Origin: Trichosphaerium sp. ATCC 40318
Lineage: Eukaryota > Protista > Tubulinea
Assembly: GCA_038496445.1 (NCBI GenBank)
Contig: JALMLS010000093.1
Coordinates: forward strand, 861,710 to 925,709
Length of the DNA stretch: 64,000 bases
Direction: 5' to 3'
The notes under the pieces are model-generated. The model saw only the letters and a program-made list of their open reading frames with translations. It was not told the origin of the DNA and searched no databases. Made by a program: the position numbers and the translations under genes. Positions 24,471-62,906 of the stretch are shown in pieces; within the stretch, counting starts at the first letter, position 1, and every line of letters begins with the position of its first letter.

Positions 24471-24954
24471 GCGAGCTCGCCGTGGCATTAGAACACGTAT
24501 ATCGCGTGTTAGAAAGTCGCGCTAGTTGGCGGTTGGTTTTGGTACACAATTAAATTGTGTACTTTTTTTTTAATTTTTTTTGTTGTTTTGCTTTTTTTAC
24601 AGACCATGAGCTCGTTGTACGGTTTTAAACACGCTTTTTACGTGTTCGTACATGACCGCGAGCTCGCGGTCGGTTTTTGTACACATAAAAAGTGTGTACT
24701 TTTTTAAAAACTGTTTTTTTATAAAGTCTTGCTTTATAACTGACTGTAAGCTTGCTGCATGGTATACAACACATGTTTATTGTGTTCGTACCCGACCGCG
24801 AGCTCGTGGTCGGTTTTTGTACACATAAAAAGTGTGTACTTTTTAAAAAACCGTTTTTTTTTTATAAAGTCTTGCTTTATAACTGACTGCAAGCTTGCCG
24901 TTGTGTATGTAACACATTTTTAATGTGTTCGTTTCTGACTGCAAGCTCGAGGTC
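24471..24954. repeat. Cluster of GACCGCGAGCTCGCGGTC palindromes in ~140-bp tandem units (intronic)
   Basis: Copies at 24654 (perfect), 24794 (1 mismatch), 24937, 24602 and 24471 (degenerate); flanking sequence repeats with a ~140-bp period. Confidence 0.9.
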
Positions 24955-25749
24955 ATACTTTCCACACAGAAAAAACGTGTTTGTATATTTATTTAATGTG
25001 CCATCTTCTAATACTCTTTTTAGCTCCAACAAGCCCTGGTTGGATGATTGTGAGTACCCATGGAAACCACAACACTGAAACAAAAATTGTGGGTACTCTC
25101 ATTGGAGAACACAGAGATGTTATCTTTGGTTTTGAGTAAGTTGGTTGTTTTTTTGGTTTTTTTTTTGTTTTGTCCATTTTTTTTTTTTTTATCCATTAAA
25201 TTTTGCGTTCAATGCAACACGCGTGGCGCATGTTCGTAAACGTAGCTGTCATTTATATTTTTTTTTTATTTTTTGTTTTTTTTTTTATTTTTTGTTTTTT
25301 TTTTTATTTTTAATTCATTTCAACTAATTTATCTATGTAGAGGTGTTATCATAGCCAACCAGTTGGTTTATGCTAAAACCATGCCCATCAAGAGGATGAA
25401 GAGATGCCTAAATGGGTTTTTTGCTGCCAGCTTTGACAATGTGTTGGAGTCCCAAATAACTCCTAACAACAAGCTGAAGGCAGCATTCAAGGTACGTTTT
25501 CCGATACATACACGTTCGGGCTGTGTTCGTTTTATTTCAGTTTTTTTTTTTGATTTCAGGGCTAAAAATATTCCCAGCAAATGAACTGTAATTGCTGTAA
25601 ATTTTAGGTAAAAATTACTGTCAAATGACAAAATTTGCAGCAAATCAACAGCAAAAAACTACAGCATTTGACGGAAAATTCAGGGTTTTTACTGAGAAAT
25701 TCAGTAAACATATCAGGCATTTACTGCCATAATTTGTCTAATAAAGGAG

Positions 25750-26265
25750 TCATTTGCCATCTCAACTCAGCAAATGGTGAGGTTATTTGCCATCACAACT
25801 CAGCAAATGGTGAGGCCATTTGTCGTCACAGCTCAGCAAATGGTGAGGTTATTTGCCATCACAACTCAGTAAACAGTGAGGTCATTTGTCGTCACAGCTC
25901 AGCAAATGGTGAGGTCATTTGCCATCACAACTCAGCAAACAGTGAGGTCATTTGCCATCACAACTCAGTAAACAGTGAGGTCATTTGCCGTCACAGCTCA
26001 GCAAATGGTGAGGTCATTTGTTGTCACAGTTCAGCAAATGGTGAGAACATTTGTCGTCACAGCTCAGAAAATGGTGAGGACATTTGTCGTCACAGTTCAG
26101 CAAATGGTGAAAACATTTGTCGTCACAGCTCAGCAAATGGTGAGGTCATTTGTCATCACAACTCAGTAAACAGTGAGGTCATTTGCCGTCACAGCTCAGC
26201 AAATGGTGAGAACATTTGTCGTCACAGCTCAGCAAATGGTGAGAACATTTGTCGTCACAGCTCAA
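25750..26265. repeat. 33-bp tandem array (~15-16 copies), left subterminal region of element A
   Basis: Unit CATTTGCCATCACAACTCAGCAAATGGTGAGGT; the core ATTTGCC/GGCAAAT recurs at the right end (43880-43975). Confidence 0.9.
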
Positions 26266-26315
26266 TAAATTTCAGGGTCATAATACAATAACTAGCCTGT
26301 TTATTTCTTACACTA

Positions 26316-28762
26316 TTACAAAAACAAATAACCATTTTCTTTGTTTTTCTCCTTCAGCTCGGCAATTGAATATTTTTGTAAACACTCCAACACTTAAACA
26401 ATAATAATTAGCGCTCGTATCACAAATGAAAAAGACGTACAGCCAATGTGATGTCTGGTTAGATTTGCATTATTTTTTAAAGAAAACCGTTTGAAATAAT
26501 TGATAATTTGATGAGAACTAACAGCAAGCTTGGCATTCTTTAAAATTCTTTTCGCTATCATATCTTCTCGCTTCTACAACACAGTGTTAGCGCATAATTG
26601 ATTGTAAAGGAATAAACACCTCATTTTTAAGCTGTGCAATAGCAGCAAAAATGTATCTTGCCGTCATTTCTGCATTCTGTTGATATGAAAGGTTTTTGTT
26701 GTTGATAACTTTCATAGCGTAGTCTACATTAACAATACGTTTGTATGATTCCAAAGTTGGCATAAAATTGAGCATGCTGTGAACACTTGTTCCAGGACCT
26801 ATTACAAAGAATGAATAGTGATTGCAAAAGTAAAAATGATATCGCACAACAAATAATTACACACTCGTCCTTAGGCACAGCTATCATCGACAACCAACCA
26901 CTGTAACAAAAATAAACATACAAATGGGTCAAAAACTATACATGTTGTTTGTGTAGCAATCAAATAAATCAGTTGGATTAACAATTTTGCATCCTTTGTC
27001 GTTGTACAAAAAAGAAACTACACCAAACACCAAGCATGTGTCAGCAACCTATCAATAAATAAGCACATCAAGTAAACAATCATTACGACCTTCAATGGTT
27101 CTTCTTCGCTCAGTGGTTTGTTGAATCCAATAATTTTGTGCTCGTATGTCGTTTTACCTAAAATAATGAGCCTGGTTTTCTCTGAGTACCAACTTCAAAA
27201 CGCATACAACTACAAAAAGAAAGAAGTTAGATAACATCAAATAATAAAAAAACAGTACCTCGCTATTGCCACATCAATGTATGCCTTCATTTGTTTTGTA
27301 TTAGGGGTTCCATCTTTAGAATACAGCCAAACACAATCTTCATGTAGTTTGTTCCATGGTGAATCATTTGTTCAGAAAAAGACAATTTTGTTTGGAAAAC
27401 TTCAAGAGAAGCCTTTGAAGATACTGCTAATATGAAATTAGTATACATACACCAAAGCAAACGCAACAAACCAGGTATGAAACCAAGTGCGGAGCCAGTC
27501 ACAGTGACACCAGGTGCGGAGCCAGTCACAGTGACACCAGGTGCGGAGCCAGTCACAGTGACACCAGGTGCAGAGCCAGTCACAGTGACACCAGGTGTGG
27601 AGCCAATCACAGAACTAAGCGCAATACCATTCAAAGCAGCAGGCATAGAACCACCCAGCTCAGAACCACTTGGCACAGAATCAGTAGCACCTGTAGAACT
27701 AACAGCAAAATCAGATGTGGCATTTGCCATAGCATTATCATGTAATGAAGGTTGCGACAAATGGTATTGATCCATAAATGTGTTCATCAAGTTTGTAAAT
27801 TGATTGATGTTGTTTGAAAGCACTTCATCGTACTCATCACTACAAATCAATCAAAAATGAGAAAATTAACACTAAATTGGATCCAATACCGTACATGTAC
27901 TTGAAAGCATTATGCTTATTGAAATGGGTAGTGGCTGAAATAAAATACATATCAAACATCACTTTTCCATTCATTAACATGTCCCAATAGCTATTAAACT
28001 ACAAGTAAAAAAATTAGAAAGCGAACAAAGCAGTGAGAAAGCGCACCATTGTTGTAAACATTTCTTTTGTTTTTTGTGTGATTTTAAATGTGAGTCCTAC
28101 ACAAAATACGCGAGCATGAAAAGCTGTTTGAGCGATGGCCACTACATGTAACAATATAAGCAAAAAACTCCAACAAATAGCAACATTTACTGCATACCTG
28201 CATCCTCTTTAGAAATGCCAGGTCGTTTCGCTTTAATTGTTCTTAAATATGCCATTATGTAGCCTTTTATCTTTTTTAATAGGCTCACATATTTCGAGGT
28301 GATGACTTTTGGATTAAAAATAAACTTTCTGAGGGTTTCATCTTCTTGCCATGCAATTTTTATGTCGTTCAATGTGTTAGTTTTGTCTGTGTGGCTGGTG
28401 GCTCCGGCTTCAAAAAATGCAATGTGAATTTTGGTCAATTCTGTTGCCTACAAAAAACCATAAATAATGTACCGAAAATAATTATTTACTCGTACCATCA
28501 TTGAAACCTGAGTAGGCATTGAGTTTTTCTTTATCACATCAATTTCTTTCTTTTGGCTATTTAGCTTGTTGACGACAACATGCATTAAATCATGTACCCC
28601 TCTAAATAGCTAGTAAGTTACAGAAAATGTAAAACAAAAAAAAGAACGTAATTTTGCTTTTACTTACTGTAACATGGCCTCTATATGCTCCGGAGTCATT
28701 TGCCATTTTGGTGGTGGTGTATTTGCCATTTCATTCAAGTTGGGTGGAGTATTTGATGCCAT
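26316..28762 (-). CDS. Element A accessory gene, unknown (possible TnpA-like ORF); probably degraded at the 3' end
   Basis: Spliced exons starting MASNTPPNLNEMANTPPPKW 38 nt downstream of the transposase stop; 27-bp PGVTVTGSA repeats at ~27480-27615. Confidence 0.55.
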
Positions 28763-28799
28763 GTTGAAGTTAATATTACACCGGAGTTGACTTTTTGAT

Positions 28800-31700
28800 T
28801 TAATTTGGTATGGCATAATGGTGGTAGTTTATCAGCCGTATGCCATCTTCTGGTGTTGTATACATTTGTGCCAATTTGTAAACACTTTTTAGCTCCACAC
28901 ATGCCATTTCATTGGCAGGTTCTATCCTATTAAAACAATGAGAACAGTTTCACATTGGATAAATCCCGTACATAACAAACTCAGTTTCAGCATCATAGCG
29001 GTATTCCAAATTAGAAATGCGATAATAGCTGGTCTATGTTAGTGTATTCTTTGAAATGACAAAAAAAAAAAGAGGACGCACTCTCCAAAAATTAAGACCA
29101 TTTCAGGTCGATGTAAACTACGATATATTCTTTTGGTTGTAATGTAAATACAATTTTTTGGTCTCTTGTTGGTACGTTCTCCAAGTTTTAAACAATGTCT
29201 TCTGATACATTGACAATTTAATTGTCCCATCAGCCGATGTCGCCGAATTGTACATTGTAAACGGGCCATTTTTTATATAATCCACCAACAAAGGAAAGGT
29301 ATGCTCTATTGCAACCTTTTCACTGAGGTTTAAATATCGTCTGTTGCACTTGTTGTTGCCTAACTCCATAATGTAAATGTTGGAAAAAAAAAACATGCCA
29401 AAGTTACTTACGCAAAGTCCATGTCATCTGTGGCCTATAATAAAATGCAGGAGTTATGACACTACAAGCAGGAGTTCGTTGTTTTTTGACAACCACAGTT
29501 TTACACACTTCATCAAACTTGCCAGAATAAGAAATCATCAACCATGGGATTTCTTTACTGGCAATGTCACTAAATTTGTTAAACCAGTTAAGTTATTTTA
29601 TCAATAACAGCGTACACTATTTTATTGTGATTTTTTGAAGAGTGCTTCCAACTCTTAATGGTTGCGTGCTTAGATTCACAGGCATAAGTGCTTAATAGTA
29701 GTAAGTTAAATAAAAAAGTGACAAAAAAAATTGCCTGAAATGTTTAAATACGCCAAACTTCTTGACCATGTACTCATAGTGATAAGGTACATGAAAATTG
29801 ATTGTATCAGTGTTTAAGCCTATTTAATACACCTTTTGTAAATAAAGTATTGGAAATACAGACCGTGCCTGGAAAGTTGTTTTTTATAGCTTTCAATAGA
29901 TTTTTATACATTTCAGTAACTCTACATAAATGCCGTTGCTCCAAATAATCTCTTTGAGTCATCACTATAAATGCCAATAAACTTTTCCTTTAAATCATGA
30001 GCAACAAAAATAACAGCAATCAATAAGAACAAGTATAGTAGTACCACATTGACATCATTTCTTCTGACACCATTCCGCGAAACACTAGCAAAGCCATTTT
30101 TAAAAATGTTCTCATATCCGTGCCATCCCAGCTGTCTTTTACCATGCATCCTTTTTTGTTCCAAACAGCCTTCATCCTAGTAACTTTGTTACAATACTAA
30201 AACAAGAAATAAACTGGTCTCACTTTCCCAAAGATTTGTTTTGTCCTCGAATGTATTTTAATCATTTGTTGATGTTTCTCTTTATTTCCTCTGTTGTATC
30301 TTCTTGCTGTAATTGTTGTAGCGTGTGTATCAAGACTATTTTGGCTATGCCCAAAATGATGTTGTGAAAAGGACAATATGGTGAATGTAAAAAGAAGTCA
30401 AAGCGAAATGGCAACATCAAAGCGAATGGACTCTTAAAAAAATGGCAATGTTAGTCATTTTCCTACTACTACAACAATTACCACTTACTAGTTTTTTTAC
30501 GCCATAGCAGCTTGTGATGTGTTCATTGTAGTTGAATCTATTTAAATCATCAAGTATTTTCCAGGTGTTTCTTTGTTCTCGTTTAACATCAACTGTGTCA
30601 GTTACCATTGTAAAAGAATCTTTTGCAATCCTACAAATTCTACACGGATAGAAACATGTGGGACTTTTCATGGCTAATCAAAATGAGTGAGATAAAAGAT
30701 AAATAGAAAAAAAATAAAGTTGTTCTTACATATCAGTTTATTGGAACCAGGAGAGTCGCCGAATATCATTGTTAATCTCAAAAACACTGTAAAATACTAT
30801 GTACAATAAATATCTACAATATGAACCATTACTTGGTACCTTTTTCTCAGCCGCAATATAACATTTGATTCCAGAATAAATACGCAAAAAATCATCTACA
30901 ACATGCTTCAACAAATCCTCTTCGTGGTGACATTTTGGCAACACAGACAACATCATTTTTCCCGTTGCACTAGCACTATTTGGCATATTTGAAACAACCA
31001 TGTACAATGGTCCAAAACTGTCTTTCTTGTCATAAGTGAAGTCGTCTTTGCTTATGTATGCTTTTGAAAATGACAATAAGTACTACAAAAAATTTATTTA
31101 TTTGTACCTGGAAGCAATATATTGTTTGTTCTATCCTGTTTATACCTTTTTAAAACATCGGCAAATATGGTTTTAATATTAGAACCAGTTTCAGGACCTC
31201 TATAAACTGGATGTGTTGTGGTAGCTCCATTTACAGTAACAGAAACTGTGGGAAGATCGTCAACAATACACTCTGCAATGCTGTCTCTTCCAGGAAGATG
31301 GTAAAGCGCGCGTTTTATGTGGTCTGATGGAGAATAAAAAGGAACCTTGGTGTTGGAGAGCATATCTCCATTATCACTTTTTTTTGAAACTAGGATTTCT
31401 TTTGTCGGTTTAAAAGACAATAAAAACTACATTACTAGTCAGGTTACATGGGTAATAATTCTGTTGCTTGCCTTTTCTTTAACATGTTTGAACAGCGTAT
31501 CTATGCAACATGAAATTATATCTAAAATAAAGGTTAAAAGACGGACAAAAAGCTTCAAATATCAATACCCTGATGTTTCACTCCAAAAAGCATCAATGAG
31601 GTGTTAAACAGCGTCAAAATTTTTTGGCAAAGCACTTTAGAAAGCTTGTGTTCCATTTTTAGAGCTAATAATAGATACCCAAACTTTTCTGCTGGAGTAG

Positions 31701-32263
31701 CAGTTGATAAAGACGCTTTTGGTTTAAAAGCGGGAGGACTTTTGTTCTCATCAAATGCTATACATTGCATTAGTGAATGAAATTTATTTGATATTAACTT
31801 CTTACCGTCGGAGTCATTTAAAGCGTTGTTTGTGAGCCAAGGTTCAAGGATGCCATCTCTAATATCTGCATCATAATTGTCTTCAAAGTCAATGTGGGTG
31901 TAGCTATCGCCACTGCTTATACTGCTAAAATCCGCAATCTGAGTTATCACCGGCTTCGTCGTAACTATCTCCGTCATCTTCAATGTTAAAATGAACTCCT
32001 GACTTTACAATATCATTTAAATGAATGTCTCCATCTAAATCATCATCAATTGGCATGTTTTGGTTTAATAGATCAGACATTTCTTAAAAAGAGATGAATT
32101 TAGCTGTGAATATAGATTTAAAATGACATCTCATACCTCTATTTGCCATTGCGGCCATATGTTTCGAAGTATTAACATGTTGATAATAAAAGTACTGTTG
32201 ATTGTAGTGTTTGTGGCATATATTGCAATAATCTGAGTCAGCCACAGCACTGTTTGAGGCCAT
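28800..32263 (-). CDS. Spliced DDE transposase, CMC/Plavaka-like, N-terminal C2H2 zinc finger (apparent frameshifts at ~31930 and ~29155)
   Basis: CNICHKH...QHVNTSKH; YISKDDFTY (D1); IFGDSPG (D2); YPCRIC; CPFHNIILG; HVPYHYEYMVKKFG; YACESKH (E). Confidence 0.8.
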
Positions 32264-32366
32264 GTTAGTTAAAATTGTATTATCACTTCGTGATTAAGTC
32301 AGAATGTTTGTGCAAATAAAATTAAAACAACTGATGAATTGATGGCAGTTTATTGCTTTACCTATA

Positions 32367-35300
32367 TCAAAAAAAGTTAACTTCATCATAAGCAAAGGAA
32401 GAGTAACAAAATTCGTACATTATTTTTTCATTAAAATTTGACAAGTACTCTTCTTTTAATTTTGTGTAACTATCTTCTCTTGCGACAATTGCTCTATCAC
32501 TTTCTTTCATTTGTTTTGCCGTTAATGGAGGAATCAATTTGTGTCTGTTGCAACAAGCACAGTTTGGCAAAGTGGAATTTGAAGTCCAATCAGATCTTTT
32601 CTGGCACCTAAATATAAAGTACGTTTGATTCCCGCTATAACCCCAACCATGAAGGTAAGCTTTCACAATCAAAGCTTTTTCATAATCTATTGCAATAAAG
32701 TTAACTATTGGTTTTAAAAAACGGGCTCATACCTGGTGTTGTCTTTCCTAAAAGTGATAGTGCCAAAAATAAATAAGTTGATCCTGTCCAACTGTCGGTT
32801 GGTTTTTGTTGCAATTGCAAAGACCTGTTGGCCAAGCCTACAACTTTTTTGAGTGTGACATCATCATCAGATCCTTGTATTATGAATATATTGTTGTCAA
32901 TGTACCTACAATTACCATGTCATCAACGAGGGGGCAATTTTAATGCAAGGAAAAAAAAAATAAGAAAAGAAACTCACTCTTTGTTTACTATGACGCTTTT
33001 TGTTATAACCTTCAATCCCGGCTTCAATTTTGAATGTTTACTACCATGCATACATGTGTATATAGTAGAGATGAGCTGAAGTTGTTTAAATCTAGTAAAG
33101 CTTAACTAATTAAAAAGGAAACAAATAAGGCTTTACCCATTTTTATCATATCGCAATATGTCTCCATCGTCCAACATCAAATTGTTATTGTCATCAATTT
33201 CTTTTTTTCGGGCCAAAGACAATATGCAATGCATATTTGCTTGTACTTGTGGCATGTTTAAAGGTACTTTAAGCCTATGATCCCATCTGATTGGTCTAAA
33301 AGGGCTTCTTTTCATAGTTGCCATTAACTTGTGCAATTTAAGCATTTTTGTAGCGACAACATTAGAAAACGGCTAAACACACAACTTAGCTAATCAAAAT
33401 GTGATTGTACTGGTACTGTACCTCATCATTTCTTTCCACGTGTCGTAACACAACTGTAAAATACTGTGTACGGGCTGTAGAGTAAGCAGTTTCAGGACAA
33501 CTCACTGTTACTGTATGAGGTATGCTCATTGGACTTTTAATAACAGCGCCTTCTTCATCTTCTTCTACACCGTGCAAGCCCCATACAAATTGATTTCCAC
33601 TTACATTAATTGTGTCGTCAATGAGAAGCTTTTTTGAATAATGACTTTCATTGTTCAGTGCTATAGCAGCACAGGTAAAGCCGCTTCTTTCATTCATTGC
33701 TCCTCCAGTTCCATCACAGTGTCTTTCTAGCTCAGCATCTTTCTCTGTCCACCCTTTTAAAAGGTCAAATTGACGAATTATTATTACAATATTACCTTCA
33801 GTTCAACATGCAACTTGGAGCAGTCTTTTTTATAATCCAACCCGTTCTTTAAACCACAGGCATAATGAAATGAAATCAAAGGTTCAAGCAATTGTTTGTC
33901 CTCGTCCTCTAAACGGTATGTAGTGTCACAGAAATTATTGCCTTTTGTGACTCCTGAAACTGGAGCAATCCAACCCACACATTTTTCGCCATCTTTTGTT
34001 TCTTCAAAAGAAACTGAAGAGTATGGACTGACATAATATGGAGTGTTGATATGTGTGTCAGTGTATGCTTTCAACTTGCATGTAGATTAGTAATAAGCCA
34101 ACAAAGGAATGTGACAGTCAAAAGGGGAAAAACATACCCTGTATCTTAGTTTTTTGACATGACGTTTAACAAATTGTGTTAATTTGTTGTGAATGGTGCC
34201 ATCATCCAACGCGTTCAATCCACTGAGCTGTGCATAGTACAAATACACACCTATTGGTTTTGTTGGTTCAATAGAATCTTTTTGGTCAGGTAATTTAGTC
34301 GCTCTAACTGCATCACTTGCGTAATTGTAAAATCTTCCTAAACGAGTTGCAACTTTTTCTTCATCAACAAGAGAGCTCTCCAATATTTCTTTGATCTTTT
34401 GTTGGTCTGACAATTCTCGTTGTAATTTTTGGGAGTCTATTATGATCTCGCTTGAAGTCATACCCACTTTAAAGCATCTAATAGCAGCATTTAAAGTTCT
34501 AACTGTAGGTGGCCTTCTTAATTTTGTTCCTCTATGTCCTAACTTTTGTTGTGCCACCTTATGTATAGCCACGGCACATTTATAAACATCAGAAGCTTGT
34601 AAGCTCATTGTTTTGGTAGCCTATGATGAAGTTAGCAGACAACAAAGCTAACACCATTATTTAATAAAGCACCTTTTCCAATGTTTCGTAAAATGACTCA
34701 GCTGTCGGAATTGGCGCATTTGCTCCAGAAGAAGCTCTAAGTATTGTTTTCAATCTTTTGTGTCTATGCTCAAAATGTTAAAAGGTGATAAAATCCATTG
34801 CCGCTTTGTACCTATTGTCTACTTCCAAAGATATGTCTACTTGTTGCAACCAATCCTGTAAATTGTTTTTACTTGGTTTGTATAATTCTTGAGTCACAAC
34901 GTCTGCCAATAATCCATATAACTTCTTTTCTGTTGAAACTATATCAGCTACATATTCTTTTTCTACATAATTCTGTCTTAAATGGTATTGTTAACAAAAT
35001 ATTGAAAGTAGAATTAAGCACCTATTTTTTGTTTTTTGTTTCTTCTTTTTGACATTCTAACAATTGTATTTAGTCGTGTTTTTTGTATAAAACAATTGAA
35101 GTACCATAATAAAAGCCATTTGTACTCCTCTTGTTGGCGGTCGCTTTCTTTTTTTATATTTATACAGAACTTCTCCATCATCTTCTTGGTCAATATCTGA
35201 CATTGATTCATCACTCGATGTGCCACATGATTTGCTCAATTGATCGCCAATAATTCCCTTGTACAAAATTAGCAAGAATGTATTAAAATAGTGTAATGTA

Positions 35301-35802
35301 CAGCTGTTGGTAGATTGCTATCATTGTCACTATCATTATCACTGTCAAAGCTTATGTCATCTGTATTTTCACTTACAGCATCTTTGTCAACGCCGTCTCC
35401 ATTTTCAACGCTGTCTCCGTTTTCTATGCTGTCTCTGTTTTCTATGCTGTCCCCATTTTCAATGCCGTCTCCATTTTCTATGCTGTCTCTGTTTTCTATG
35501 CTGTCTCCGTTTTCTATGCTGTCCCCATTTTCAATGCCGTCTCCATTTTCTATGCTGTCTCCGTTTTCTATGCTGTCCCCATTTTCAATGCCGTCTCCAT
35601 TTTCTACGCTGTCTCCGTTTTCTATGCCGTCTCCATTTTCTATGCTGTCTCTGTTTTCTACGCCATCTCCATTTTCTATGTCGTCTTCAACTTCACCTTC
35701 AATGTTTACTTCAACGATTGCATTATTTACAGCCTGATCTCTTTCATTGGATGGTGGAACTGTTATGAGGACAGTTCTAGATATTTGTCTTCTTTGCTGC
35801 AA
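32367..35802 (-). CDS. 2OG-Fe(II) dioxygenase-like domain fused to an SRA-like domain (element A copy; ends approximate)
   Basis: RHCDG (HxD), FVWGLHG, PHTV (distal H), FTVVLRH; then MHGSK...GLKVI...ANRSLQLQ. Collinear with 53748-56430. Confidence 0.65.
35390..35680 (-). repeat. 18-bp coding tandem repeat (IENGDS/G x ~16)
   Basis: Repeated ATAGAAAACGGAGACAGC-like unit within ORF 35269..35802. Confidence 0.9.
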
Positions 35803-36436
35803 TATCTGGGCAGCTCTACCACGTCGCCTGTTTGAAACTCTAATACCAAACTTAAATCATGTTTAAGGGGGAACTTATGTACTTTAAGGTATTACCATTG
35901 GCAGCGCATTACATTGCTGTTACACATAAAGGAGGAACTTATGACTATTAAGCCATCCACCATTGGCAGCGTAATACAGTTGTTGTATGTGAGAAATAAA
36001 CTTGTTACTTATGAGGGCAATCTAACTGTTAAGGCACTCACTTAATGCACTAATTACATTACTACTTACCATTGGCAGCGTATTTGACTACTTTAAGTTA
36101 GTTGTGAAATAGTTCACAAATTACACGTCATCATTACACAACTCTTTCTTTTTCTAAAAATCATCTCTTATTGGGGTAATCTCACTGTTAAGGCACTCAC
36201 TTAATGCACTATTTATCATTACTTACCATTGGCAGCGTATTAGAGCACTTTAAGGCAACAGCAAAGCCCATGCGAGCTGCAAATAACCTGAGTTTTCTGG
36301 GAAATCTTTGAGCTGGTATCAAAGATTTCCACCTTGTGACTACACAAAACTGGTTCTTTACTTTATGTTACAGTTTTATTATTTAGGATGTTTCACTAAG
36401 TTTCACTAATGGGGGTAATCTAAGTGTATTAAGTAA

Positions 36437-47400: not shown

Positions 47401-47451
47401 AAGAATTTGTTACGAAATTGTTGTTTATTTATTATCCACAACAGTACTTGT

Positions 47452-49559: not shown

Positions 49560-51605
49560 CGTAAAAAATAACAGATTACGATGTGGATTATGATGTGGAT
49601 TATGTTCTGACTTAATGTGTTTGGTTTTTGTTCATCATATTGACATCTAGATGAGATGAAAGATGCGACACGTATGGTGATATGTCATATTGTTAAGTTA
49701 TACAATATATTTCTTTGAAAGTGTTTTTGTTTTGCAGCTACATTTGTTTATCGTAGGTTGGAGTCAAATGACCTAAATTTACTTACCAATAAGTTATATA
49801 GTGATTGTTGATGTGATCTAACGGACCTAAAGTGTTAAACGATGACAAACATCAAAAAAAAGCTATAAAGCGTTAAATTAGGTTATTTTTGCGTAGAAAA
49901 AAGACATGGTGCATTTGTAATGTTGTTTGGTTCAACATAGAAATGTGTTGCGTTGAACTGATCAGTCATGAACAATTGTGCTTGTGAACAGCATCAAATT
50001 CTTGTTTTGAGCCATTTCCGACAGACGAAACTGAAAGTAGTGTAATATGATTTTTTATAGAAGTCATGGTTGTTTCATGAATCCATGTTCCCTTTTGACA
50101 CAACCAATTGCTTTTTACTAGCTCTTTTGCCAACACCAGAGACCATTGAAGTGCTTAAAGAGCTTTTATTAACATAAAGGACTTGACACAAATAAGCAGG
50201 CATTGGGATACTTTGAAAACAAAGATATCACCAATGTTATAGCAAAAGCAACAACAAGTGACTTGGTTGACAGGGTTGAACTCAAAGTGGCAGTAAAGAT
50301 GCTCAAAACAGTATTCAAAGAGAGAGTGGTGTTCAAACTGGTACTTTCCAATGCGATGTATGTGATATCTCAACTAAAGACAAGCTGTAAAAACTATATA
50401 CAAGTGTTAACAGAGGCTGTTTGTAGCACTTGCTCACGAACTAGTATTGAACGCGAACGACTTATCCATCACGGTTCAATTTGACAGTGTAGACCTAAAA
50501 GAATGACGCACAATCAAGATACTTCGAAGACATCTTAACAGCCTGCTATACATTGCTAAAGTTATCAATGGCAGACACTGGACATATAGAAATCAGTGTG
50601 CATGATAACTTACCTTTAAAAGTAAGACCATATCATCTGTTCAGGTTGTCAGGGTGATACACAGCATTGTATTGGACGACGTTGAAGATAAATCGCACCT
50701 TTCACCATCAAGTGACTCTTTACATCACACAAGTCTGGTCACTAAAGACAAACCATCATTCTGAAACAAGTAAAACGTACCAAAGCATGAACTGTCTGTG
50801 TTGATTGCTCAGTCTGTGTTTGTTGTGATGGCTGCATTGGCGTTGCTTATATTGCTTGGACGGCTTGAACGGCTTGAACAGCTTGAACAACCTGAGGTAC
50901 CAGCTTTTGTGATGTCATATTGTTAGAGTTATTAGGATTAATGCCATTAGCTTGTTTTCTGACTGGCGACAGTGCTGCTGAGGCTGTTTGTGTTTGTGCA
51001 AAAGCGACTAAAAGTAAGAAATGAGTGAAATTTATGAATAAAATTTGTACATACTCTTTCATAGCATAGCTGTGGGTAAACCACCGTTTAGTGGCGTGTA
51101 AGCTACATGTGGAACGTTTTGAGCCATTGTTGCACGTTGAGGCATATTTTGAGAGATAGCGCCCATTGCGTAACTGTACACCACTACACAACGCAGTTAG
51201 TAACGCAAAAGTACTTTGAGGTGGCATACCGCCTTGAAGCGATCAAATTAGCTCTAGCAACTAGCTGCTTGTTGCATTGCAACATGGTTCACCAAGAAAG
51301 TTGTTTGTTGTGGCGACATGTCCTTTGTAGAAGCTGTTTGGGTTCATCGTATGTTGTCTTACGCCCGTATTTGCTGTTTATTCAGCAAGTAGCCACTAAA
51401 GGCATTTTGTGATTCTGGGTTTTTAACCTCTATTGCTTGTGTTGGTGCGACTTGTTCATTTCCTTGCACACATTGTTCGTTTGGCGTCATTTGTGCAGGT
51501 GAACCTGTTAGTTGCGCATTGTTTGCAAGTTGCGTTTGCACAATTTCACCTTTAGTCCTGCCGGACCAAAACAAAACGAAACAAATACATGAATAAAGGT
51601 TTTAT

Positions 51606-52682
51606 TTACTTGGTCAAATCTATTACTTCTTTTTTAATCTTATATTTGCCAGTTTTCATCTTTAAGATAAAAAGATCGGTACAATTGAATTTTACTTTGC
51701 GTCCTTTGATGTACCTATAACCCGATTCAAAAGTGTTGGTTTCATCATAGTTACGCGTGTGTCCATGAAGGTATCCATTCTTATAATTTCGTACAGTTTG
51801 TCTGCTACCGTTTTCACGAAAGCGTTTGAAGACCACCATTGCACCGTTCTTGTATTCACATACCTTACGTACATTTCCGCATGGATAATATGCAGTCAGT
51901 TTTCCGTGTTTTACTCCTTGATGGAACGGTATAATGCGAACTATTTGGTTGTTCTCGTAAAAACGAGCTTGGCCGTGTTTCTTACCATTGACAACGGGTA
52001 CTGAAGCAAACAAGTTACCTTGACTATACAAACGTTGTAATCCATCAACATGTCCACCAAAAAAGATACGAGTTCTAGTCTTGTTTCCGTTCTTGTCGTA
52101 GTCTGTAGATTCTCCATGTTTTACTCCAAGAGAGTACTGCTGGTCAAGTGCAACACTTCCGTCTTGAAAGTAATGCACATCTTTACCGTGTTTCATACCC
52201 TTTTTATAGTCCGTCTTTGATTTGATAGTGCCATTACGAAAATACTTGATAAGTTCAGATTCCAGAGAACCGAATTCTATTTTGCATTTGCTTATCAGCT
52301 CGCCAGAATTGTGATATTGCTTAAATTCACCGTGATACACTCCATAATAATAATTTCCGTGTGTGTATGTGTCGTCTTTTATGAATACGGCAGGTCCATG
52401 TGGTGATCCTCGACGATAACTACGCTTACCACAAATAGGCTTGTTCCAATTTTGTGTCCAAGTTCCTATCGGTTCCAAATCCTCATTAAAACGCATTAAT
52501 GCCAAATATTTGCATACTAGAGGCATTAACACATACGCTTCATAGGCAAATGAACAAATGAAGGCAATCTCCTTCAAGGAAAAGTCTAACAACGACTATC
52601 GTTTGTTAGTGTTGGAAAAAACTAAATTCCGTACGTGACAGAGTTGACTTGGCGTAGTTTGTAGGCGCTTTTGATTTTGCAT
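51606..52682 (-). CDS. MORN-variant (YwqK-like) repeat protein with degenerate F-box-like N-terminus
   Basis: Repeats YxxGxKHGxxxxYxxxG; N-terminal LLDFSLKEIAFICSF...LMPLVCKYL; one short 5' intron, then a ~990-nt exon. Confidence 0.8.
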
Positions 52683-53747
52683 GCTAATCCTAAGTACATT
52701 ATTAGTTCGTGTTTTGGGATTGTACAAAAAAAGAACAAATCACATAAATAAATACTCTTGTACTAAAAATGGGTGCACGTCCTCAATGTTGTTTTGTTTT
52801 GTACGTTTTTGAGGAGTTCTACGCGTTTAAAGCGAAAACGCGGTTCTTAGACGATTAAAGTGGAAATACACTTTAAACGCACTTGCCACGCACTTGAAAC
52901 TCAAAAATATAGGCAAATCGTCCTTTTTCTAGTTTTAAAAACAATTTTTGTGCACTAGCCATGGAAATGCACTTTAATGCTAAAAACCGCTAAAATTAAG
53001 AGACTACGTACATTTTTTGCAAGAAATACTCGTTTATTTACTAACGTCGCTATTTTATGGTAAAAAGATGAGAATCAACCTTATACAGTACGTACATTAT
53101 GTGTTAGGCGTATTTAGGCGTCTATTCGTTGGTTAGAAGGCAAAGTAAGAAAGAAAAAACTTAAGCTGGTTCAAAGAACCACCAAAAGTCGCATTTGGTG
53201 TAGAATAGCGTTTTACGCTATTTAAACCTGTACAATAGCTTTACACAAGGTACGTAAGGTGCTACAAGAAGTTTAGGTTGATTTGTTTACTAGAGAACCT
53301 ATATAATCGAAGATTTGCGTTGGAACAGTACGTTTCTCTATTTTACATTGCATTTAACGTAGCGTTGGTTATGTTGCACAAGTTTAGATGTTGTGTTGTG
53401 TATAATGCATCAAGTCGTGAGCTGCAAGTCTTAGTTGTTGCAGATGCAAAGCGTTTGTCTTCTATACGATGAGAGTAAAACAGTGTAATGAAACTGCGTT
53501 GCCAATGCAGTTGCAATAAAAACGACTGAGGTATCGTTTTGAGCGAAAAGAAAGCTACACCGATGTTCAGATACGTTTGAAGAGTTTTCGTCAAGGAAAA
53601 GTACAACAACGTTTAAAACCGTTGTTAATGGCAATGTTAACATGCAAGATTACAATGGTGGTGTCAAATGAGCAATTTTGTTATGCTAGTGAACATTTAC
53701 ACTTATTTTTTGATTAAGCGTACTAACTCAATTTAGAATTGTTGATC

Positions 53748-56430
53748 ATGAGCGTAGAAACACCCAACAAGAAACGGTACGTCAACAAAGCACAAGTTTG
53801 ATTGTAACTTTATTAATAGCAAACGTTCAACTGTCAGTTCTCACACCAGCTCTCTTAAAGTAAAATTTCATCAACCTGCAGCTGTACTAATGCGTGTGCT
53901 TGGTTTAACACTCATTGTTTTCTTTAGCCATCAACGTATGCAACTGAAGCTCAAATTGAAGACTTAACGAAACAGCTACAAGTAGCTTGCAAGTCTGTGG
54001 CAAGTGTTTGTGCCACAGTATCAAGCATTAGCAATTTTCCGTTGTCTGGTAAAGGTTGGATCCTTACCAAAAAACACATCAAACAAACATCTAACAACGA
54101 AGACGTGAGAACAATATTAGCCACAGAGACTCCAAATTGTCTTTTATCCAGCAATTATATTTCAGCAATTAAAAAGGTACGCTTACATCATCTTTTTTTG
54201 TTTGTATTAACCACAATTGCATAGGCTGAAAGCCAAAGTACTTTCACAGTACTACAAATTCACAATGAGGCAATGTACATGGCAACAAAGGCTACGCAAC
54301 CTGGACAAACGATATCACTGGTTCCAAGATTAGCACATTGCGCGATCGTCTCGTTGAAACAAAATGGATCTGTTATTCCTACACAAGAAGACGAAATGCG
54401 AATGATCGACAGCGCTCGAACAAGCTCGAGAAATAATATCATTGTTAAGTTAGATGTGAATGTACCCATGAAAGGTTTCATCACAAGGCAAAAAATAACA
54501 GGACAACGCCACAAATTAACAGCAGGTGCAAGAAACAGCATATATTTGTATCATGTGCCGAATGAAGATAATGTGCAAAGTATACTTGGCTGTTGTAAGC
54601 AATTTGCAATGAAAAACTCGCATCTCTTAAGACATAAGGTACATACGATAGTTTAATCGTATTGTTTACTTGATTTAGATAATAGCAATAGACAGTAAAT
54701 CTGCGTTTACTGCGTATAAAATTAAAAAACAAAGAAGCTGGTTTTTCAACTCATCATGGATTGTTCCGTTTACTGGTAAAATGGCTGGCAACAGACACAT
54801 GTTCAATTGGTCAAAGACTGATGCGCAGGACAATATTCTTTTACAGCCTTTGATCGATTTGCACATGACGATGAGCAAAAATGCAAATAGTCGCGATTTT
54901 AATGAACAGGGAACTCTTTGCATCAGCTTAAAAGTAAGCAAACGTTCAAACAGTTAACTCGTAACATTATACTAGGAATACATTCCAGGTTGCACAGGAA
55001 TTCCCTTTCATGTTGACGGTGGCATAAACAGCCACGTAAATGAAACTAATGGCATCACTTGTTTTGGGTTTACATTGCGAGATTCTATCGACTGTAATTT
55101 AAAAACAATAGAGGTTGAAGGTAAACTGCAAGTAGTTGTTCATCACAGTTAATTGTATCATTAGGAAGCCACAAAACTCACATTTTAACAGGCAATAACT
55201 TTATATGGGCATTGCATGGTAGTTGTGCTAATGGCAAAGGCGCTGGAGGAGTAAGACACAAACTAGACATAACTGAGTTGCAACACAAACAAAGTGTCTG
55301 GACCATAGTATTACGACGCATGATTTTACACACAGGAAAGGTTTGTGCTAGAATCCAATGTTTACAACTTTTTTCACATCACTTTAGATTGATGACGCAA
55401 TAGACAACAAAATTGCTTTTATAAACCAACTGAGCGCTTCTTTGAAACAATATCCAAATTTAAAGCCGTTGAGCCATAAGTTGGAGCTAAATACCTCATC
55501 AATTCGATACCAGGCAAACAAACATCTTTTGTTAAATGTGTTGGAGCTTCAGGCAACCCAAGGTTTACCAAAAGATGGATTATTTTGTTTACATGAAGGA
55601 GATTTACTCATGTCTGACTGTCACGCCTTGTATGCTTTGGGCTTGTACAATAATCCATACTGGGCTTTGCATGGAAATAAGAATGTTGGTTTGAAGGTTA
55701 TCATCAAGCCTGGGATGTATAACAATGAGTACTTTTATTCTTCTTTTACAGTAGCTTGTTGATTGTTGTTTTAGAATTGTACACAAAAATTGGATGTTAG
55801 TTCGTTTAAGTGACCACAAAACACACTACAATAGACAAGTGGATTACATCAAAAAATCTATTGAATTACAAGCTAAGCACCCTACTGACAGATTTAAAGG
55901 CAAAACGTACACCATTTTACCTTTAAATGCAACCAACGCAGATGTTGAAATACAAAAAAAATATCAATGTGAATTTCCAAATTGTACGTCAGTCCGATAC
56001 TCAATTTGCTAAACACATATTTGTGCAGGTTCAAAAGCAATTGGGCATGTGCAAGAGTGGTATGTGCATGGCATTGTGTACAATTACCAAGAGCGCATTG
56101 CTGTCTTTAGAAGAGAGCGCAGACAAAAAATGGCTTTGTTGGAACCTTTTGAAATAGTCGAAAAAGATAAAACTGACAGCTTCACTTTAGTAGACACCAG
56201 CTTGACATGTGAATGTTGTTTATACAAACCCAAATTTATTACCACCTTTATGTTCGAACCTACACAAGCACCTGTCGATGTAGATCATGAAGCAAACACT
56301 GCAGCATTTAATAGTGCGGTCAACAATTCAACGGTACTTGTTTTGATCCATATACATTGATTTTCAGCTTAAATTCTGTTTGTAGACTCTTGCAAAGTTT
56401 CCATTTAACATGCACAGCTCACGTGTATGA
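53748..56430 (+). CDS. 2OG-Fe(II) dioxygenase-like (AlkB-like) domain fused to an SRA/YDG-like domain (element B copy, core apparently intact)
   Basis: LKEYIPGCTGIPFHVD (AlkB-like xYxPGxGIxxHxD; HxD at 55009-55017); FIWALHG; VRHKL; WTIVLRR; then GLYNNPYWALHGNKNVGLKVIIKPGMYNNE (55640-55729). Confidence 0.7.
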
Positions 56431-56525
56431 GCAGCCTCATAATTGTTAGTTACAAGTCAATAAAAATGGCACAGAAATACGACGACTTTAAATAAATAAA
56501 GATATTTTTTCACTTGCAACTCTAA

Positions 56526-59500
56526 ATGAATCAAAGGTATACTTGCGTGGCTTGTAATACCTGTTTATGGCGAAGCAATCGTGCAAGACATGAACAAACA
56601 AGTTTACACAAAAGCAACTTATTACTGCGAACAATATCAAATAATGCATTACGTACTAGATCAGAACCTAATGGCCACAATTACGACACAATTAACTTAT
56701 TGCGTACTTGTTTTGTCAAAACTCCCTGAAACTAACTTATTTAGCTTCTTTGGGCGTAGAAACAACAAATTTGCAGGACAATGTTACAAATTGGGTTGAA
56801 AATACGCCATCTTTTATCCATCATCCAAACCATCCCGAAACAATGCTCAGCCAGTCAATTATCTCCAAAACTACTCATGACAACAACCTTACAGAAAATG
56901 ATCAACGCGTTGAAAATCAAAATGTAAACTTATGTGAACGTACAGCTGTTAGAATACAACAAATGGAGTTTGTTACAACTTTGCAATCGAGCATTCCGAC
57001 GATAGAAAATGCTTCAGCAACTGACCAATTTTTGTACTTGGTACGAAAACTGCAACTAGAACAACAATTGCCAGATGAAAATGTCAAGCTATGGTTGAAC
57101 TTTTTCAAAACAGCTGAAACGATCTTCAATCAACAAACCAGATCTTTCGATGCGACAACTTCTCAATCGCCGCTTTCTTTTTTCGAAAACAAATTGAGTG
57201 TTGCTTCCAGTAAAAAAACTTTTCAAAAGGTACAACCAATCACACTTGTTCATTGTATTGTTAACATCACTTCAGTACACCCCAAAACTCAACATGCAAA
57301 CCATACGCATCAAAACTACAAATAACTCATTTATGGAAATTCCGTTCATTCCTCCATCTGAATATGTGAGATTGCTCATGTATCATTTGGAAGATAGAGA
57401 CAGCATAAATGACAACTCTAAATATCCACACAAGGTGGATAGAGCTGATGTAAATGGCGATATCACCAATGTGCAAATATTCGAAGGCCCAGAAACATCA
57501 CAACGATACCACGATATGTATCTTGATGTAGAAAAAACAAAACAAAACATAAGGCTTGCAGGTGCTGTTCAGCTTTGACGTTCCTTCTGTTATAACTTTA
57601 AAGTTTAGCTTATGTCTGCCATGATGATTTTACATACGATAAAAAGGATAGTTTTGGTCCTATGTATCTGGTTATTTGGAACATGCCAAACAGCGAAGAA
57701 ATGCAAGGGAAAATGACTTTGTTTGTGTTACCCACCAATGTAGTGATGGCAAATGCAATGAAGTATGTTGTAGATGACATTGCAATGATGTATGATGGCA
57801 TTGAACTTCATAGCCCCAAATTGAAACGTGTACGAACACTTTTATTTCATTGTTGTTCTTTACTCTAATTGTTACAGACTTTCAAAGTGTACTTAAGATT
57901 GGAAAAAATACTAGGAGACATGCCAGGAACATGCAAGGTTCTTTGTACGTTAAATTAATTACAAATACTATGCTAAGTTGATAGCTATAAAAAACCATGG
58001 TTCCAACCTTCCGTGCCGCGTTTGTGACATATCTAAAAATGGTTTAAAAAACCTGCAAAATAATTACAAAAAACGAACAAAGGATCAAGCAATCATTGTG
58101 TACAATAACCATAATATGTCCAACACCAACAAGCTATATTCTTTGTGTTTTAATGCCTTTGTACGTAATTACAGCTTTACAAACTCTTTGACACTGTTTG
58201 TAGTCACCGTTTTTGTTTCTACCCAATTTTGACATTTTCCAACATTCTCCTTTTTGTCCCTTCCACAATATTCTATTGGGTATTTCAAAACAGGTATTAA
58301 TAGGCACACTTGAAATGCTTCAAGAAAAGCATTCAAGGGCTGTGCAAAAACAAATTAATGCCAATATCGAATGGTATAAAAAGCAAAAGCACGTTTCTAT
58401 CAACAAGTACACGTTTGTTTACATGAATTTATCATTAACATTGATTTTAGAATGAAAGCAGTATGGGATAAACAAGGAGACTTGTGTTTGGTTCAACATG
58501 GTTGGGATGGAGCTGATACAAGATCTTTTTTGCAAATGGCATTGTTTGTGTTCAGGTCGTTCAGGTCTAAAATTTTCGAGCTGTTTTTATGGTAGATACC
58601 ATGGATTTGTGGTATAATTATACCATTGATTACAATTTTATACCACAAATTCCAGTATAATATACCATAAATCAAAGGATTTATACCATAAAACAGCCAA
58701 ATTATACCATAAATATGCAGTAGAAAGTGCGAATTTATACCATATTTTTTCACCTGAAAAAATGCAATATATGGTATAATTCTACCATAAAACACGGTAT
58801 AAAACACAGTATAATACCACAAAGTCTGGTATATTATACCTTAAAACTTGGTAGATTATACCACAAAACCAGGTGTATTATACCGTGTAAAAACTGTTCT
58901 AATAATAAAACCACATTTATTAATACATTTTTTTGTTTACATCCGTGACCTTTGGTTTTGTCCATATCCTCTTTTGTGGTAGTTGACACATCAAATAACC
59001 TTCAAAAAAAATATTGTACTTGCTGTAAGTGCATCGAATGGACATAGCATGAAAACTAGAAGAAGAATTAGTGAAGGCTTGATGCACAAAATAAATAGTT
59101 GTACAAAAATTGCTGTTTTGTTGTGGTGGCAGCACTGGGAGTAACAAATGACCTGTGTGGTGGAGCCAAATCAAGACTAAAACAAAGAAATGAAAATAAC
59201 TGCCAACTTCATCGGAAACAAGTTCTAGCAGAATCGTACCTGTTAGTTAACACATCTTGGTTTTTTTTTTATCATCTATCTAGCTTGGTTAAAACCTATG
59301 GCAAGCGGCTTCAAAACAACTACTTTTAGCGTACCTTGTGTTGTGTGGGCGATAAACTGGACAAGACTTAGTTTTGTGCTCTGACTTAGCCAATTGGTTT
59401 ACAATATCACTCGTAAGGTCAACGCATGGGTGTGAAGCCTAAATGCTATCTGTTCTGGCAAATGCGGGCGTTTAGTAGGGAAAAATTCAAAAAAATCCAA

Positions 59501-61807
59501 AAAAATCCAAAAAAAACCAAAAAACTCAAAAAATGGGTAGGCTCTGAAACAACTTGGCCTTATAGCACTATTCACGCGTTTTAACATGCATTGGAGCGTA
59601 TATCAAAAATGTCAAAAAAAAATAAATAATTTTGCTCCTGATTTGGTAAATGAGGCTGTATGGCGTTGATTGAATGTAAAAATGCCTATGGAGGGGAGAA
59701 AAAAATGAGAGCGGGGAAAAAAACCTCCAATTGGAGGTTTTTTGCGAATGGGCATTTTTCAAGCGCTAAACGCGTTTTTGGTGTGTCTACCACTGTAGCG
59801 TTCTAACATGGGGTACGTGGAGTGGTTTCTTTCTCAAATACTGTCAATCGGAGAAAATTGGCCAATTTATCCCTAAAACGCCCGCAATTGGGGCACGTTA
59901 CCAGATTTCTCTCTTAAAACTGTTTTTCACACATTTATATGCCAATTATGTTCAATAACGGCTACTGTCAAAGCATTGTGTGGTATGGCGTTTGCGTAGG
60001 GCCAAAGGCTATTAAATCAAGTATAGACCAAGTGAGCTTTGACTAACTTATACTTATACGGTATAATACCACGGTATAATACCACATTTTATGGTATAAT
60101 TATATGGTATAATGCACGGTATACTATACTTTAAAATACAGTATAATACCATGGTATAATACTGTGTTTTATGGTATAATTATATGGTATAATGCATGGT
60201 ATAATATACTTTAAAATGCAGTATAATACCATGGTATAGTACCATGTTTTATGGTATAATTATATGGTATAATGCATGGTATAATGTACTGTAAAATGTG
60301 GTATAATACCATGGTATAGTACCATGTTTTATGGTATAATTATATTCTATAAATTGAAATATGGTATAAACATGGTATAATGGCTGTTATACCATTTGTC
60401 CAAAAAACATGGTATTATACCATATTTTATGGTATAATTATATGGTATAATTATGGATTATACTGAGCTTGTACCATAAAAGGTGATTATACCATAAAAT
60501 ACGGTATAATACCATGATAATTTTCAGACCTGTTGTGTTCGAAAGCAGTAATGCAAACATGGTACATCACAAAAAAAAAAAAATCCAATATTCATCACTT
60601 TAGGTGCGCTTTATTGAGTTATATTGCCCTCATGTCTAGAAGTTTTCTACAAGAATACAAATTACATTTGGTCACTCATGCAGCCCTCAGTTTAAGAAAT
60701 TTGGTAGCAATTAACTTACCAAGTAAGTCTTGAAACTTATTTAATTGTATTGACAATATTTTGAAAGATGTAAATGTCACAACTCCTAACTTTCACGTTA
60801 TTGTACATCATGAAGATTTTATACGGATGTTTGGCATGCCAAAACATTATAGGCACAAAACAATACATTTATGTGCTTTTTAACACCTTTATTAGCACGT
60901 ACAGTTGTGAATCTAAACATAGGAAAATAAAAAATTGGAAACGAAGCACCAAAGGCTGCAAAAAAATACGGTACATATACCTTTTCGACTGTTAACACGA
61001 GTTTTTGTAACACATTTTAGAGATATAATGGCAAGAGAAAGTGATTCTATTTCTTCCTATTTTGCTGGGACGTTTAGTAAAACAATGAATAAATTGTCTA
61101 GCAACGAGCAATGTGAAATCGACAAACTCTCCAACTTTTGTTATTTGGCCAAACGCCTTCTCAACATACCTGAAGCTAAATGGACTCTTCGTACTGAATC
61201 ATTTACAAGTACACTGCATTGATTGTACTTTTAGATAATAGACAGTTGATTCGGTTTGCATTTTTGTCTCAAAAATTCAAAACAGCATTAAACAATGACA
61301 CAAACGAACGTGGCATTGAAGACACTTTACAAATTGCAATGTATAACTCTGCCAAATGCGCTCAAAGAGAATTAGCTATTTGTGCTTCTAAAAATACTTG
61401 TTTTAAAACTTGGAGACCGCACAAGTTCGAAACAAGAAGTGATTGCATTTACATTGAAACAACGGCCATTGTACAATTGCACTCTCAAGGAGAAGTTTAC
61501 GTATTTGGCAGGTAGCAAAAAAACCCTTTAAATTGATTTGTGATCGGATACTAATTCGAATTCAGATTGTTTACGATAAAAGATGTTGCAAATAGATATG
61601 ATGAAATTACAGAACTGGTAACGTGCGTACACAATTGTCACATTGATTCATTTATTGAATGCGTTTAGAATCATTCACAATGAAGATGAACCATGCGCTT
61701 GTGTCCCATTATCCATGATATATAGAGTTGAATGCATCATTCCACATCCTGATGCTGAATCGAACATTTACTTGGTGAATTACTACCAAAGAACCATTCC
61801 CAAATAA
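56526..61807 (+). pseudogene. Spliced CMC/Plavaka-like DDE transposase with C2H2 finger, interrupted by element C
   Basis: CVACNTC...RHEQTSLH; YVCHDDFTYDKKDSFGP; LGDMPG; LPCRVC; CPFHNILLG; HVIVHHEDFIRMFG; YSCESKH. Paralog of 28800-32263. Confidence 0.85.
58562..60532. mobile_element. Element C: 1971-bp non-autonomous CAG-terminated element
   Basis: TIR CAGGTCT(G)AAAATT; TSD TT (58560-61, 60533-34); GGTATAAT/ATTATACC subterminal motifs (80-bp period at ~60088-60340). Removal restores FRSLCSKAVMQTW. Confidence 0.92.
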
Positions 61808-62399
61808 ACATTCGTACTTATATATATTTGGTGAAACTTGTCGTAATTTATTATGCTTTTGGAAATAAACAGTAAATCCTAAGGAATCCCAAGAATTATC
61901 GGATTATTGTTGGAATCCTGTGTAAAATCCAATGACAAATAAAAACACTTTACGGATTTTTATCTAAATTCCATTAAAATCCTGAAAAAAACAGGAATTT
62001 GACTGGATTCCAATTAAAAATCCGTATTTTATTTTACTACTGTGAGGTTGAAGATGAGGTTTCAGAAGAAATCCAGCTGCAAAAAAGACCAAGAAGAAGC
62101 AGCAGAGCACATGGGTTGTTCAAAAAATCAAGTGAGCCTTGGTTTGAAAGTGTAGTAACTCACAGACCGATCGTACTCGGTACGAACACGATCGCGATGT
62201 GTTGGTTTGTTTTTTTTTTTCCCTTTCTCTTTTTTTTTTTTCATAAACCAATGTACCAGTTGATGTTATTTAGATTCTGATAAACCACAGCCTTCTACAT
62301 CAAAACATGATGTAAATAAAAGGTCAGGACCAACAAAGATGACCACAAGAAGCAGTCAAAGACTAAAACGAGGTACGTTAACTGCGAACACATATTTTC

Positions 62400-62906
62400 C
62401 GTGTTCGCATTAGACCGCGAGCTCGCGGTCGGTTTCCGACACGCGTTTTACCTGTTGAAAAATAGCTCGGAGGGTTTTTTTTGTTTGTTTTTGTTTTTGA
62501 CATAACTCAGTACTCATGTTGTTCTTACTTAGCACTTGCACCATCCAACAATGGTGAATCTTCTTCTGAGAAGCCTGCTGCCTCTTCCTCTCAATATGGC
62601 TCTCAATCCACCCAACCTCTAACTCCAAGAACCAAGAGGAGAAGAAGTTTGGCTTTGAGAAAGGGGTTGTTGCAAAAATTTTACAAGGCAAAGACTGAAG
62701 AGATGCTCCAATTGTTGTCTATGCCTACTTTGATTAAAAAAGTGGATGGAAGATTGCACCTCACCTTGGTTATTGATCCTGAATCAAAGTCTGGTGACAC
62801 CTTGATTAAAGGCAAGTTTTATATTAATTTTTCCTCGCCGAATTTTTTAACACACGTTTTCCGTGTTCGAACGTGACCGCGAGCTCGCGGTCGGTCGCCG
62901 ACACGT
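62400..62906. repeat. Two further intronic palindrome modules
   Basis: Perfect GACCGCGAGCTCGCGGTC at 62413-62430 and 62875-62892, each flanked by CGTGTTCG ... CGACACG. Confidence 0.9.

Follow-up and report, generated by a model that had tools for sequence, protein, structure and literature searches.

Introners are, to our knowledge, the only known mechanism that adds introns in bursts; protists and fungi commonly carry them, but reports from animals are rare. Introners of the general kind considered here have been documented in 201 species (PMC12130899), and families have been described in Micromonas pusilla, in Aureococcus and in the wider catalogue by Gozashti et al. (PMC9860276, PMC12130899; reviewed in PMC11282704). 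In the tunicate Fritillaria borealis, introns derived from miniature inverted-repeat transposable elements (MITEs) occupy species-specific positions (summarised in PMC11282704). The symmetrical "sister" introns of the Hypoxylaceae measure ~90-200 nt and are built of imperfect inverted repeats, 45-55 nt long, joined at a perfect palindrome in the middle (PMC8469720). Copying through hairpin RNA/DNA and break repair was proposed for such fungal symmetrical introns. In the present study, we analyzed a 64-kb stretch of DNA from Trichosphaerium sp. ATCC 40318 (contig JALMLS010000093.1; hereafter the window), in which the 18-base perfect palindrome GACCGCGAGCTCGCGGTC recurs within one gene. The copies form a repeat family with foldback anatomy; they are confined to predicted introns of that gene, share one orientation, and are constrained in the core and in four short arm motifs. 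With a probability of roughly 0.55, the palindrome would be the centre of a short non-autonomous foldback of the MITE or introner type, sense-oriented and removed as, or within, short introns. We classed the family as introner-like, and it is probably a new member of that known kind.

Perfect copies of GACCGCGAGCTCGCGGTC were located at 24654, 44094, 45966, 62413 and 62875, and four imperfect copies carried one mismatch (24794 and 45105), two mismatches (45664) or three mismatches (24937). The positions given for the perfect and near-perfect 18-mers in an initial annotation, which had been made from the sequence alone, were correct. The nine copies with no more than three mismatches compared with none in 100 dinucleotide-preserving shuffles of the window. 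Further degenerate copies were found in the first cluster at 24467 (4 mismatches) and at 24602 and 24885 (5 each).

To cover the whole window, we searched it with a profile built from eight copies, with filters off and significance set at E<1e-3. Significant matches were obtained only in 24466-24981, 44053-46028 and 62379-62937, all of which are parts of one plus-strand gene, referred to below as the outer gene. The gene's own sequence amounts to ~6 kb, or 9% of the window, and holds all significant copies, whereas the 58 kb outside it, with many other introns and intergenic DNA, holds none. In agreement with the initial annotation, no copy was found in the upstream and neighbouring housekeeping genes or in either of the two large insertions nested in the outer gene. 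The units and their remnants were as follows.

24466-24981, plus strand: units of ~140 bp arrayed in tandem within the first long intron, 24120 or 24153 to 25023 (Tandem Repeats Finder period 140-143, 2.2-2.6 copies; profile E 2e-6 to 2.5e-21)
24654, 24794 and 24937, plus strand: core-bearing members of this array; 24467, 24602 and 24885, plus strand: its degenerate members
44053-44157, plus strand: unit with a perfect core (44094), 87 bits, in the 3' part of intron 25492-44203, which holds nested insertion 1
44601-44640, plus strand: arm-only remnant in intron 44587-44708, a first hairpin without the core (profile E 2.8e-4; hairpin pattern)
45062-45163, plus strand: unit with one core mismatch (45105), 88 bits, in intron 45057-45245
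45622-45726, plus strand: unit with two core mismatches (45664), 81 bits, in intron 45538-45775, with a T-rich tandem repeat (20 bp) before it
45925-46028, plus strand: unit with a perfect core (45966), 83 bits, taking up most of the 135-nt intron 45914-46048 (RNA fold z -4.4)
62180-62205, plus strand: arm-only hairpin overlapping the donor of intron 62180-62273 (hairpin pattern; not significant in the profile search)
62379-62475, plus strand: unit with a perfect core (62413), 89 bits, in intron 62373-62532 (fold z -4.8)
62836-62937, plus strand: unit with a perfect core (62875), 87 bits, in the GC-donor intron 62812-62975 (fold z -4.0)

Other perfect or near-perfect hairpins were observed in the first long intron at 24190-24245 and 24340-24375, and their sequence is unrelated to the unit.

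The repeat unit is a foldback of ~85-105 nt centred on the 18-base core, and the profile matches span 97-108 nt. The ~45-bp dyad described in the initial annotation (GTGT, 8-9 nt, core, 8-9 nt, ACAC) was present in all nine copies, but it is only the inner part of this larger unit. Beyond the inner GTGT/ACAC pair lie the outer arms, AACA(C) and TGT. The four short arm motifs around the core (ACAC/GTGT type) were invariant in 9/9 copies, and the spacing of the unit around its centre was symmetric. The whole unit folds back on itself, in the manner of the inverted repeats of a MITE or other terminal inverted repeat (TIR) transposon.

Conservation was unevenly distributed along the unit. Mean pairwise identity was 0.92-0.94 in the core, 0.71-0.78 in the segments holding the arm motifs, 0.38-0.48 in the spacers and 0.27-0.33 outside the unit. 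The spacers were thus free relative to the core, as the initial annotation had stated. In the four closest copy pairs, 68 of 72 core positions were identical, compared with 44 of 67 in the spacers and 159 of 221 at other non-core positions. The idea that the spacers are hypervariable was rejected, since their identity in these pairs (66%) did not differ from that at other non-core positions (72%; p=0.36). The constrained core and arm motifs therefore stand in contrast to a background of the unit that is ~30% diverged. The core contains four CpGs, and 5 of the 7 core substitutions were CpG transitions. Because the window is mostly CpG-depleted, this pattern indicated that the intact cores are either young or constrained; neutral decay from a single ancestor cannot explain them.

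Two fold models suit the arms: local pairing forms three hairpins, and pairing across the unit yields a single foldback that carries the core at its tip. In either model, 82-95% of cells paired, and the outer and inner arm motifs paired in 9/9 copies. When 91-nt units were folded as RNA, 6 of 7 beat their shuffles (z -2.0 to -4.8). Neither covariation above shuffles nor compensatory change was detected in the two fold models, and no known RNA family was matched in the window by Rfam. Owing to the lack of covariation and the strict sequence invariance, a symmetric protein complex that recognises double-stranded DNA would be favoured over a selected RNA fold. The conservation pattern and the absence of RNA covariation agree with the earlier proposal of a multipartite protein-binding site rather than simple duplication, although no protein was identified. 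In the mechanism that we propose, the copying machinery would include a symmetric protein complex that takes core and arms, in double-stranded form, as its signal, and lineages of the family would stay identical in core and arms while drifting elsewhere. The copies would have created the predicted introns instead of landing in older ones.

The intron context of the units was analyzed by frame arithmetic, in which one good GT-AG or GC-AG junction pair was predicted from the sequence for each interval. Frame-preserving GT/GC-AG junctions exist around every copy, and the unit-related intervals measure 94-238 nt. The predicted introns are 44587-44708, 45057-45245, 45538-45775, 45914-46048, 62180-62273, 62373-62532 and 62812-62975, with further ones from 24120 or 24153 to 25023 and at 25136-25340. 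Core-bearing copies were present in 7 of 13 predicted frame-preserving introns, remnants in about four, and nothing in two. Among the roughly four introns with remnants (arm-only or degenerate), one was significant in the profile search, and the rest were judged by eye. The earlier statement that the palindrome sits in most introns is fair on this count, but generous.

In four introns, 40-63 nt separate the donor from the start of the core. In leave-one-out scoring, all six genic copies scored higher on the plus than on the minus strand, one of them only marginally. Each unit sits shortly after a donor, and behind it come an A-run, then a T-rich tract, a branch-like CTTACTT and finally a TAG acceptor. 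The GTACGT donor was tried as an element-specific signal and rejected, because this hexamer occurs 25 times on the plus strand across the window; together with the CTTACTT...TAG 3' signal, it is general to the window and also occurs in unit-free introns.

The introns resembled one another at 72-86% identity over 65-160 bp, as in 44018-44177 with 45590-45747 and 62387-62466 with 62849-62928, and the similarity never reached into exons. One pair, the 3' part of 25492-44203 and intron 45538-45775, was similar to within 2-4 nt of the acceptor. Published criteria for introners ask for introns alike at E<1e-5 and for similarity that does not come from gene or exon duplication; they also ask that the similarity run to both exon-intron boundaries in one orientation without entering exons, and that at least 4 copies lie in genes of different paralogy groups and be removed by splicing (PMC12130899). 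In the window, the intron matches had E values of 1e-7 to 2e-21, and no exon-to-exon similarity was found. The lack of mutual similarity among the exons therefore excluded plain duplication of the copies.

The outer gene and its two insertions were delimited as follows.

24044-63400, plus strand: outer gene, an orphan with a putative start near 24044, a poly(A) signal near 63378, ~14 coding blocks and two large nested insertions
25557-44017, no strand assigned: nested insertion 1, ~18.5 kb, motif-free, with CAGGG-initial inverted ends (13/14), within an outer-gene intron
47061-62042, no strand assigned: nested insertion 2, ~15 kb, motif-free; its inverted ends begin with CAG and match at 16/17, and a direct repeat of 8 bp flanks it (7/8)

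The open coding blocks flanking the units are 47-128 codons long and lie on the plus strand. Phase 0 was found at both 25491 and 44204, and the flanks of the second insertion, which sits inside the coding sequence, were also phase-matched, the flanks being compared as separate pieces. Since both gaps have inverted ends and phase-compatible coding flanks, a single gene from ~24.04 to ~63.4 kb interrupted by two insertions is supported, and the description of an outer gene with nested elements held up. The gene was searched exon by exon; the query 44713-45606 was a natural uninterrupted open reading frame (ORF) that reads through an in-frame 189-nt intron. This unit-bearing intron, 45057-45245, contains no stops, and the frame stays open if it is retained. 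No Pfam family was matched by the outer-gene exons, and a word search found no relatives of the largest exon. An exhaustive search of ORF 44713-45606 against 1.84 billion representative proteins returned none.

Nested insertion 1 is a composite with several tandem arrays, an ORF of a Mutator-like element (MULE) and a small gene, and its flanking repeat is unclear. The MULE ORF (36657-38690, plus strand) is intact, encodes 677 aa and, according to Pfam, combines a Mutator-like transposase domain with an F-box. An exact look-up of this protein gave no match, and only two relatives were found, at 27-28% identity. One of them, P0001 on Logan contig L127 (27% identity), shares the transposase/F-box architecture, and the Logan contig that bears it contains no repeat unit. 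The MULE was considered as the autonomous partner of the unit and rejected, as no related ends were found around its ORF. The small gene (42690-43764, plus strand) consists of three blocks with a weak F-box match, ~50-nt introns without the unit, and a poly(A) signal at its end. At 40409-41632 lies a 1.2-kb low-complexity array with periods of 15, 18 and 33 and an extreme GC skew of -0.53, in which several frames are open on both strands. The ends and 8-bp flanking repeat of nested insertion 2 are hallmarks of the hAT type, and a 23-bp tandem array lies just within its left end. No transposase family was matched by the ORFs of this insertion, one of which (51606-52592, minus strand, 328 aa) contains MORN_2 repeats. 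The remaining 20 ORFs scanned from 27-62 kb matched no Pfam family.

Upstream of the outer gene, housekeeping neighbours were represented by a proteasome alpha-1-like exon (10501-10860, plus strand) and a Pumilio-like exon (19664-20146, plus strand), in a region with a GC content of 0.40-0.42 compared with 0.31-0.39 in the 20-64 kb part. The proteasome alpha-1-like exon scored best, at 165 bits, with mammalian proteins, compared with 150 with plant, 121-128 with protist-parasite and 108 with yeast proteins. Taken by themselves, these scores would suggest an animal, though not human, or a close relation of animals with a compact genome. At 22322-22349, 4.7 copies of a telomere-like GGGTTA repeat lie interstitially. 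When 48 ORFs and exons were scanned against Pfam, no viral gene family was detected, and none of the tools used showed a resemblance to a virus in any part of the window. Outside the window, a literature search found no paper with the palindrome string, and the core-plus-arms pattern had no match in public metagenome DNA. The bare 18-mer was matched in at least 120 metagenome and 6 viral-contig sequences; these matches were dismissed as chance, being all single-copy, 51-78% GC and without arms.

The relics of introner-type elements that the initial annotation had listed as its third option fit the anatomy, with short GT/GC-AG intervals, one orientation, a fixed donor distance and intron-only similarity, whereas boundary-to-boundary similarity was only partial. 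Several observations weigh against the introner-like interpretation. Apart from the pair that nearly reaches the acceptor, similarity between introns begins 12-23 nt after the donor and ends 31-90 nt before the acceptor. Inspection of the seven introns with units showed no target-site duplication (TSD) at their boundaries, where element ends are undefined and short duplications could escape. The centre of the unit is best conserved, unlike ordinary MITEs, in which the termini are. All copies lie in one gene, within a 64-kb window with one host gene, and no homologue of the outer gene was found to show intron-free positions. No autonomous partner with matching ends was found in the window, and the ends of both nested insertions differ in sequence. 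It is possible, though doubtful, that the unit is instead an ordinary MITE-like repeat that inserted secondarily into pre-existing introns and marks introns that it did not make. Similarity that falls short of the splice sites in most intron pairs would suit such a repeat, as would the tandem array at 24.5-25.0 kb deep within a long intron and the occurrence of the GTACGT donor and of CTTACTT...TAG both in introns without the unit and at other places in the window. Secondary insertion does not readily account for the single orientation of all six genic copies, the near-constant distance between core and donor, the unit that takes up most of the 135-nt intron 45914-46048, or the absence of copies from the 58 kb outside the outer gene. 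If the unit proved common and randomly placed genome-wide, it would be just another MITE. The core and arms could be a cis-element selected in place in each intron, as a protein site in DNA or a pre-mRNA signal acting in transcription, chromatin or splicing, which a repeat may have seeded once. We consider this unlikely. The core and arm motifs are 94-100% identical in the closest pairs against ~70% in the rest, despite four core CpGs; the spacing is symmetric about the centre; and, within the window, the copies are limited to one gene, all of which speak for selection in place. However, an RNA-structure role is unsupported in view of the missing covariation and compensatory change, the copies of the tandem array decay freely, and no candidate binding protein emerged. 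Moreover, constraint on source elements would give the same pattern without any host function.

An introner family that spreads mainly in one gene without TSDs by hairpin RNA/DNA and break repair, or a cis-element, taken over from the core and arms, that this orphan gene needs in each intron, was given a similarly low probability. One-gene spread without TSDs through a palindrome-centred foldback would point to this mode of copying rather than to cut-and-paste. Within-gene spread by plain duplication, or homogenisation of introns by gene conversion, is very improbable: the copies cluster within a few kb and some of them do form a tandem array, but outside this array similarity never extends into exons, and identity between the closest dispersed pairs is no higher than 72-86%. 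Conversion could not be driven by an identical tract as short as 18 bp with flanks remaining ~30% diverged. The other two options of the initial annotation, targets of a VANC-like anti-silencing factor and origin/enhancer palindromes like baculovirus hrs, found little room in these results and are highly unlikely. In favour of these options, the window contains a MULE transposase, and the motif, an imperfect dyad with a restriction site at its centre, is palindromic and dispersed. Nevertheless, there is no profile match in 25557-44017, which holds the MULE ORF, or in the other insertion. The hr-like option also lacks a viral gene family in the Pfam scans, and the strand bias and donor-proximal placement are unexpected under both options and do not suit an origin or enhancer. 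If the introner-like interpretation is true, the family would add a data point on how introners are recognised and copied, and this genome would become a place for studying recent intron gain.

Compared with known systems, the units resemble baculovirus hrs and the VANC targets of VANDAL transposons in being dispersed short palindromic or repeated motifs of the sort thought to bind a dimeric protein. The hrs (compared by description) and VANC targets lie in the element that encodes their binding protein, whereas introns of a cellular gene hold the present motifs. Unlike VANC targets, which are found inside their own transposon, they are absent from the mobile insertions; and hr palindromes, again compared by description, sit among viral genes, whereas Pfam showed no viral family among the 48 ORFs and exons scanned here. 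The MITE-derived introns of Fritillaria borealis have non-canonical ends (AG-AC, AG-AT) and clear TIRs and TSDs, whereas the introns described here are GT-AG or GC-AG and show no visible TSD. With introners, the family shares short non-autonomous inverted-repeat elements on the sense strand and similar introns at unrelated positions, with similarity that stops before the exons. Published introner families carry TSDs of 3-9 bp in many cases and have copies in several unrelated genes. Unlike published introners, the present family lacks a visible TSD, has all its copies in one gene, and is most conserved at its centre instead of its termini.

The closest formal analogue is the Hypoxylaceae sister intron (PMC8469720). 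In both, inverted repeats overlap at a central palindrome without flanking duplication, a likeness of form only, as the sequences are unrelated. The Hypoxylaceae palindrome is 10 nt and A/T-rich, whereas the present one is 18 nt and CpG-rich. In Hypoxylaceae, the symmetry extends over the entire intron and takes in the splice sites, and the ancestor was a twin intron (PMC8469720). Here, units of 97-108 nt lie within introns of 135-238 nt, in the 5' part, and are followed by an asymmetric T-rich tail without a 5' counterpart. Both systems nevertheless share a predicted hairpin RNA and a palindrome that is best kept in the least diverged copies.

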